Below, one piece after another: positions 11,587-12,126 of a DNA stretch of 64,000 nt; positions within the stretch are counted from its first letter, which is position 1, and the number at the start of each line of letters is the position of its first letter. Where the stretch lies: the sequence record OU509535.1. One strand, given 5' to 3'. The translations under genes were made by a program, and so were the position numbers. The notes below the pieces were generated by a model that did no database searches, was not told where the DNA came from, and saw nothing but the letters and a program-made list of their open reading frames with translations.

Positions 11587-12126
11587 ATGAAAGAACTCGT
11601 CAATCAACAGGTGTTTTCACTAAAACAGTTCAGTGTAGTGAAAGCATCATATAAAGATTCTGTATATTATATTGCAGGTGATAATGATATTACACCATAT
11701 GTAAAAAATATTCAGTCCGATCATTCTAAAGTAGACAATTCAGTACTACTCAATGGTCTTAATAAATTTCTGGAAGAACATCCAGAGAAGAACAAACTAC
11801 AAGTACCAATGTTTGATTTTGTGTTGCTTGATGATAACAAAACATCTGCACAATTCGTTGCAATGATTTGTTATGAAATCTTTAATATGACTGAAGAAGA
11901 AGCATTGGATGTTATTAATTCATGTAATTCAGATGCACATATGTTCAAGGTTGGTACTTATACCGATGAAATGTGTATTACATTTGCAGCTATGATTGAT
12001 AATGCTAATGCACAACTAAAGCAGTATCTTAAATATGATAAAATTCCAGCACTGAATGAACGTCATTATGATGCAGCACTGGAAACACTGGAAAATCTAA
12101 TTCGTCAGGACTATCCAGAAGATTGA
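11587..12126 (+). CDS. ClpS-like adaptor domain protein with N-terminal extension
   Basis: [46 protein letters not shown] aligns by eye with ClpS [36 protein letters not shown]. Confidence 0.7.

Follow-up and report, generated by a model that had tools for sequence, protein, structure and literature searches.

Among bacterial readers of N-degrons, ClpS is the textbook case. This adaptor grips the alpha-amino group of an N-degron with N47, D49, and H79 in Caulobacter, which are equivalent to N34, D36, and H66 of E. coli ClpS, and substrate binding is lost in a D35A/D36A/H66A triple mutant (PMC12493166, PMC8346999, PMC9810338). With respect to the protease partner, E. coli E79 forms hydrogen bonds with E28 and T81 of ClpA, and E82 is linked by a salt bridge to R86 of ClpA, as is K84 to E23 (PMC12493166). 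Delivery of the substrate requires, in addition, that the N-terminal extension of ClpS enters the ClpA pore, and delivery is inhibited when this entry is blocked (PMC9663308). ClpS is also encoded by some jumbo phages, for which a feeding of host ClpAP has been proposed (Iyer et al. 2021, PMC7824862), and ClpA is conserved in Rak2-like phages (Attai et al. 2018, PMC6102473); the literature searched contained no experimental work on a ClpS from any phage.

The gene considered here was taken from a window of 64,000 nucleotides of sequence record OU509535.1, to which the coordinates below refer unless RaK2 or another phage is named; the genes, the protein features, and the terminator-like hairpin described in the window all lie on its + strand. 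The coding sequence (11587..12126, ATG start) is preceded by an AGGA-type ribosome-binding site, starts 15 nt past the stop codon of an IF3 gene, and encodes a ClpS-like protein of 179 aa equivalent to RaK2 ORF154 / F403_gp381. Over positions 11062-12752 the locus is 99-100% identical to the Klebsiella jumbo phages OU509535.1, Muenster, RaK2, K64-1, phiKp_21, KP13-7, and RCIP0023, and 71.5% identical to Escherichia phage 121Q. The source of the gene is a RaK2/K64-1/Muenster-type Klebsiella jumbo phage, and genome-wide questions were put to RaK2 (345,809 bp), which is 99.7% identical across the ClpS-like locus. By tblastn the protein was found in 72 phage records, all of them RaK2-like jumbo phages, at identities that fall from 100% to 34%; the phages are named for Escherichia, Klebsiella, Salmonella, Erwinia, Yersinia, Pectobacterium, Serratia, Cronobacter, and Xanthomonas, and further members of the family are metagenomic (word search) or come from 18 loci in IMG/VR. 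The ClpS identity of the gene is already in public annotation: the Muenster record names it "putative Clp protease adaptor protein, HHpred 98.3%", the 121Q record "protease adapter protein ClpS", and UniProt (H6X3W1) "ClpS core domain-containing protein", and the protein is assigned to PHROG 15940. What is new here is the restricted two-module architecture, the opposition between an apparently unconstrained pocket and an invariant glutamate on the putative docking helix, and the link to phage-encoded ClpA and ClpP.

Residues 70-156 (11794..12054) are a true, much altered ClpS core, in which strand, two helices, strand, helix, and strand follow one another. Pfam ClpS (PF02617) matches residues 74-143 with an E value of 2.5e-5, at 24.4 bits against a cut-off of 23. 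Caulobacter ClpS is reached weakly by a single-sequence search (E 0.014); a profile of 23 family members searched against the PDB retrieves ClpS chains only, E. coli ClpS at an E value of 1.3e-9, and the hhalign probability of the alignment to ClpS is 96.5%. The AlphaFold2 model built from the family alignment has a mean pLDDT of 83.7 and is matched by Foldseek to ClpS structures with TM of 0.90-0.92 and rmsd of 1.1-2.0 A, while VIA superposes its residues 70-155 on 85/85 residues of E. coli ClpS 3O2O (Z 15.1, rmsd 1.6 A); the next-best folds, the bL12 C-terminal domain (Z 8.5) and yeast Ubr1 (Z 8.0), score far lower. The NCBIfam equivalogs for ClpS (NF000672 and others) have cut-offs of 112-159 bits, which are missed by far (24.1 bits against 112, and 23 against 149), and no family of ribosomal proteins, that of bL12 included, matches the ClpS-like protein in Pfam or NCBIfam. 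The initial annotation, which was made from the sequence alone, had aligned the C-terminal ~90 aa with ClpS and added that an extra N-terminal domain was present. The homology was borne out by Pfam, the profile, and the fold, since the HMM and structure predictions suggested there as a check return ClpS, but the placement was not: the core occupies residues 70-156, and an added helix follows it within residues 157-179. The N-terminal domain is indeed there, with residues 1-65 folded in the model.

The register between the phage and E. coli proteins is the same over residues 75-139 in HMMER, hhalign, and MAFFT, and the pairing of L99 with L148 comes from MAFFT alone. In this register E. coli N34, D35, D36, Y37, and T38 become D82, D83, N84, K85, and T86 (11830..11844) and H66 becomes N114 (11926..11928), as read directly from the codons, which agrees exactly with the earlier statement that N34-D35-D36-Y37 and H66 appear as D-D-N-K and Asn. 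The three residues that bind the alpha-amino group are therefore not kept, N34/D36/H66 being replaced by D82/N84/N114. Nor are these positions held to another set of residues across the family. In the 25-sequence alignment the N34 position is Asp in 21 members, Asn in three, and Tyr in one, the D36 position is mostly Pro (P15/A3/K2/S2/N1/D1/T1), and the H66 position is Asn in 18, His in six, and Lys in one; remoter members recovered by exhaustive search have Lys at the N34 position and Asp, Val, or Leu at the H66 position. Of the residues that form the hydrophobic specificity pocket of E. coli ClpS (L32, V33, T38, M40, V43, M62, V65, and L99), most have a retained counterpart (L80, L81, T86, V91 for V43, I110 for M62, C113 for V65, and L148), but the gatekeeper M40 is replaced by Ala (A88) at a position that is among the most variable columns of the same alignment. 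Reportedly, the matching Ala gatekeeper mutant of Caulobacter ClpS widens specificity (Wang et al. 2008), and the titles of PDB entries show that an M53A mutant was crystallized with peptides. As judged from the alignments, the triad positions are unconstrained across the family and show no single new conserved specificity, and this drift argues against one defined new class of N-degron. The pocket that had been called remodelled is thus changed in its residues, as claimed, but drifts across the family instead of having settled on one new specificity.

The start of helix 3, where E. coli ClpS contacts ClpA, has another pattern of conservation. By alignment, E128-M-C-I-T132 (11968..11982) corresponds to E. 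coli E79-V-A-E82-T83, so that E79 becomes E128, E82 becomes I131, T83 becomes T132, and K84 becomes F133. No member seen lacks E128, and T132 is present in all 25 aligned sequences and is nearly invariant beyond them; the position of E82 is occupied by I/H/M/T and that of K84 by F/Y/L across the 25-sequence alignment. E128 and T132 belong with N141, Q143, and D151 to the near-invariant residues of the core, which lie in helix 3 and strand 3. The conservation of the E79 equivalent and of the added modules, while the triad drifts, suggests that selection preserves one ClpA-contact residue and the modules, and not the ligands of the N-degron. Moreover, the helix-3 positions predicted to face ClpA vary between phage clades even though the enterobacterial hosts are close kin, a pattern, compared on the phage side, that weakly favors a partner from the phage, changing along with the protein, over an unchanging one from the host.

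The N-terminal added domain (residues 1-65, 11587..11781) is defined by its AlphaFold2 fold and by its conservation. In the model it comprises strands at residues 6-12, 15-22, and 25-30 and helices at 36-42 and 51-64; residues 6-64 are predicted to be folded with pLDDT of about 79-89, which leaves about five residues before the first strand, and a model of the domain by itself again shows three strands, with two to three helices (pLDDT 78.8). The residues that the family conserves best lie mostly in this domain, namely F10, V17, A20, Y22, S25, Y27, Y28, A30, G31, D34, I35, T36, Y38, and V39; all but T36 and V39 are near-invariant in the 25-sequence alignment, and the motif D-I-T-x-Y-V is invariant in the remoter members as well. 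Mean column entropy in the 25-sequence alignment is 1.18 for the N-domain core and 1.17 for the C-terminal helix, against 1.62 for the ClpS core. The domain has no family of its own in Pfam, NCBIfam, or PHROG, and Foldseek finds nothing for it in the PDB at E <= 0.001. Several candidate relatives were set aside: the best hits of a wide VIA search (ornithine cyclodeaminase-type and integrase arm-binding fragments) have Z of at most 4.4, below a meaningful level; the look-alikes in the ESM Atlas (small viral hypotheticals, LPD16, and DUF1108, with TM of 0.5-0.67) were not taken as kin; and hhalign gives a probability of 0.1 with the neighboring KTSC protein, hence no relation. No stand-alone homologue of the domain was found by word search. 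A profile of the domain searched against 1.84 billion representative proteins returned 10 matches, nine of which are proteins of 170-183 aa matched at their N terminus and the last a fragment of 60 aa; this exhaustive search indicates that the N-domain exists only fused to this ClpS core.

Between the two modules lies a linker (residues 66-74, 11782..11808) with conserved P66, L71, V73, and P74, the last of which MAFFT pairs with Pro25, the junction residue of E. coli ClpS. At the other end of the core, residues 161-179 (12067..12123) form, according to the model and the conservation, an added C-terminal helix with an acidic end, whose conserved residues are E169, L171, I172, R173, D175, P177, and D179. 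The disordered N-terminal extension of ClpS is absent; a folded domain stands in its place and the junction proline P74 alone is kept. With about five residues before the first strand, the classical hand-off mechanism of ClpS is not expected.

The phage brings its own candidate partners for such a protein. RaK2 encodes one ClpA homologue (47,691-50,000, 769 aa) with Clp_N, two AAA+ modules, and the D2-small domain, which aligns with E. coli ClpA over its full length (E 2.7e-177) and has I-G-V at the site of the E. coli I-G-L loop that docks on ClpP. The genome contains no other match to AAA_2, a family that would also catch ClpX or ClpB, no second ClpS-like gene, and no Leu/Phe-tRNA protein transferase. 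The N-domain of the phage ClpA is ~19% identical to that of E. coli and keeps D25 for E28, S80 for T81, and R/K for R86. The RaK2 ClpA N-domain has an 8-residue insertion in a nearly invariant segment (about residues 89-127), which exceeds the remainder of the N-domain in conservation; this segment may be a docking surface specific to the phage. We had also considered an argument from co-variation, in which the salt bridges are lost on both sides, and dropped it since, in the HMMER register, phage ClpA still has R/K at the position of R86, K84-E23 being the only ClpS-ClpA pair that is lost on both sides. RaK2 further encodes a ClpP homologue of 255 aa (300100-300849, E 8e-40) in which the Ser, His, and Asp motifs are conserved in the alignment and whose gene sits among nucleotide-metabolism genes. 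RefSeq labels it "head maturation protease", which is likely a naming artefact; the T4-type prohead protease of RaK2 is a separate gene, gp092 (PMC3622015). Counted over phage records, the phage-type N-domain of ClpA is present in 73 and the ClpS-like protein in 72, with nearly identical tallies by genus; OU509535.1, 100% identical to the window, carries both genes, and so do 10/10 of the IMG/VR genomes with the ClpS-like gene that were tested. With its own ClpA co-occurring with the ClpS-like gene, the phage offers a partner at least as likely as the ClpA of its host.

Homology and fold, the mapping of residues and their conservation, the architecture, co-occurrence, and synteny make it tempting to hypothesize that the protein, derived from ClpS, is an adaptor or a regulator for the ClpAP of the phage and that recognition has moved to its added modules. 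We infer the docking, the outcome (delivery or inhibition), and the substrates, and we hold this reading tentatively, with a confidence that stops a little short of even. The ClpS core and the E79/T83 equivalents being kept, and ClpA and ClpP being present in the phage, the helix that carries the conserved E128 and T132 would dock on the N-domain of the phage ClpA. The reading of N-degrons would have been lost together with the conserved triad and the disordered extension that is pulled, the N-domain and the C-terminal helix would recognize a partner or a substrate in place of the old pocket, and the docked protein would be dedicated to the phage ClpAP protease, either as its adaptor or as its regulator. 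Since ClpA and ClpP are encoded by the phage itself, its protease is more likely to be served than that of the host. Several observations weigh against a phage ClpAP partner. The co-occurrence lies within one phage clade and is confounded by descent; the ClpA and ClpS-like genes are ~90 kb apart in RaK2 (47.7 kb against 138.9 kb), in separate operons; the immediate neighbors are translation-related (IF3 and KTSC, and bS21 in a Vibrio relative) and none is a Clp gene; and the residues of the E. coli salt bridges, E82 and K84, are not kept. In view of the RefSeq name of the phage ClpP, the ClpAP pairing is itself putative. A more ambitious form of the hypothesis, a private degradation machine in which the ClpS-derived adaptor uses a phage-invented recognition domain to hand specific host or phage proteins to the phage ClpA-ClpP, possibly coupled through the co-transcribed IF3 to the takeover of translation initiation, seems to us unlikely, although worth stating.

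The same docking surface could face the ClpA of the host, and this is the first alternative to be weighed, to which we likewise give a rather low probability. Here the protein would redirect host ClpAP by means of its added domain, or would be a non-delivering competitor of host ClpS that blocks N-degron proteolysis and other proteolysis by ClpAP. The initial annotation had inferred an action of this kind, either a redirection of host ClpAP to new substrates such as defence proteins or a block of the N-end-rule degradation of phage proteins, and had left the ClpA and ClpP of the phage out of account. Its E79 and T83 equivalents are conserved and all the ClpS-contact residues are present in host ClpA; a ClpS core that lacks the pore-entering extension is, moreover, expected to bind and not to deliver (PMC9663308), so that inhibition rather than delivery would be the simplest outcome, and action on the host protease is the view already offered for the ClpS of jumbo phages (PMC7824862). 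Against a host target stand the ClpA and ClpP of the phage itself, the replacement by I and F of E82 and K84, the partners of R86 and E23 in host ClpA, and the variation of the interface positions between phage clades.

A different alternative comes from the surroundings of the gene. Upstream lies an IF3 homologue (11062..11571; IF3_N and IF3_C in Pfam), which is found at this spot in all RaK2-like phages and is already publicly annotated, and downstream a KTSC-domain protein (12192..12752; PF13619, E 4e-12), syntenic in all relatives examined. The conserved gene order is Dda helicase, a structural or hypothetical gene, a small ORF, IF3, the ClpS-like gene, KTSC, a virion protein, and topoisomerase II. 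The gene at 12765-13682 (305 aa) is annotated as a virion structural protein (PHROG 25121, E 7e-155) and has Cys/His-rich repeats of the C-x-C-D-D-C type at residues ~100-140. In Vibrio phage 2.275.O (MG592671.1 31702-33505) the syntenic locus consists of IF3, bS21 (RpsU3), a ClpS of 118 aa, and KTSC; a bS21 gene is also close to ClpS in PA5oct, so that the ClpS/bS21 neighborhood recurs in jumbo phages.

Two promoter-like sites precede the IF3 gene (10997-11025 and 11032-11059), and a terminator-like hairpin running into a U7 tract (12131..12190; -26.6 kcal/mol, z -6.25), which was missed by a simple scanner because of its long loop, separates the ClpS-like and KTSC genes. The position of these promoter-like sites, the 15-nt gap, and the hairpin before the start of KTSC suggest a bicistron of IF3 and the ClpS-like gene, and the two genes are probably co-transcribed. 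The RNA-labelled public runs that contain the locus are wastewater libraries, in which it is present as contigs. One true RNA library holds 151-nt pieces over IF3, ClpS-like, and KTSC, with DNA carry-over possible and strand and level not readable. Contigs from three wastewater runs are without one T of the U-tract at window position 12181, and one RNA library shows the 3' half of this hairpin in other sequence surroundings, which suggests that similar terminator cassettes exist in related phages.

From such a neighborhood one may argue that the protein has departed from the Clp system and that its ClpS/bL12-type fold and new domains act in translation, together with the phage IF3 and the KTSC protein. 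The order IF3, ClpS-like, KTSC, which is conserved in all relatives examined, the Vibrio locus with its bS21, the apparent bicistron with IF3, which has promoter-like sites before it and a strong terminator after the ClpS-like gene, and the fold that the ClpS core shares with the bL12 C-terminal domain are all consistent with this idea. We regard it as improbable: the structural match to ClpS is far above that to bL12, the profile finds ClpS chains only, no ribosomal-protein family is matched, the invariant residue is the ClpA-contact glutamate, and adjoining phage genes often share timing and not function.

Least probable, and in our opinion rather doubtful, is a reader of N-terminal residues with shifted specificity, in which D82, N84, and N114 would replace N34, D36, and H66 as alpha-amino ligands: the triad stays polar (D/N/N) in this phage, the pocket lining is retained behind an Ala gatekeeper, and some bona fide ClpS paralogues have Asp for His66 (PMC12493166), but the prevalence of Pro at the D36 position, the Lys, Val, and Leu found at the H66 position, and the highly variable gatekeeper mean that no common N-terminal ligand is selected for, the retained hydrophobic residues double as residues of the fold core, and the phage is without Leu/Phe transferase. 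These rival readings and that of an adaptor or regulator of phage ClpAP are not fully exclusive of one another.

If the docking helix was kept while the logic of the pocket and the pull-handle were replaced, the protein would show how the specificity of an adaptor can be re-engineered. If it is paired with the phage ClpA and ClpP, this would point to a proteolysis system that the phage supplies in full and that might act on factors of the host, on defence proteins, or on proteins of the phage whose turnover is timed. If, on the other hand, it is a plain ClpA regulator, the result is a modest refinement of annotation. RaK2, K64-1, and 121Q-type phages are culturable and are in use for Klebsiella and E. 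coli phage work.

In comparison with bacterial ClpS (E. coli, PDB 3O2O/1MBU), the phage protein shares the core fold and sequence homology and keeps the equivalents of the junction proline, T38, V43, G74, E79, T83, and L99. It differs in its size, 179 aa against 106 aa, which includes the added N-domain and C-terminal helix, in its triad, D/N/N against N34/D36/H66, and in the replacement of E82 and K84. ClpS cores with single changes of pocket or interface have been described in Leptospira ClpS1 and Agrobacterium ClpS2 (His to Asp, Lys84 to Val; PMC12493166), but those proteins have a disordered extension, a normal size, and most of the triad, and no added folded domains. The N-domain of UBR1/UBR2 and the C-terminal domain of bL12 possess the same alpha/beta fold (Z 8.0 and 8.5) with no sequence match, and are not the family of origin.

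The nearest comparison is with the short ClpS of other phages, Vibrio 2.275.O (NVP2275O_046), PA5oct (EST35_0260), and Atu_ph07 (AUZ95447), which likewise come from jumbo phages with ClpA. In all three Y37 is replaced by Lys and E79 is kept, and the N-domain is absent. The Vibrio protein retains N-D-D, has Asp at the H66 position, ends in a C-terminal helix with an acidic tail as in the RaK2 type, and occupies the same syntenic place (IF3 ... ClpS, KTSC, topoisomerase); PA5oct has N-D-N-K-T and His66, and Atu_ph07 has D-D-Q-K-T and Glu. As the Vibrio and PA5oct proteins keep more of the pocket and all three are devoid of the N-domain, we place the RaK2-type protein at the derived end of a series, with the N-domain as a later gain.
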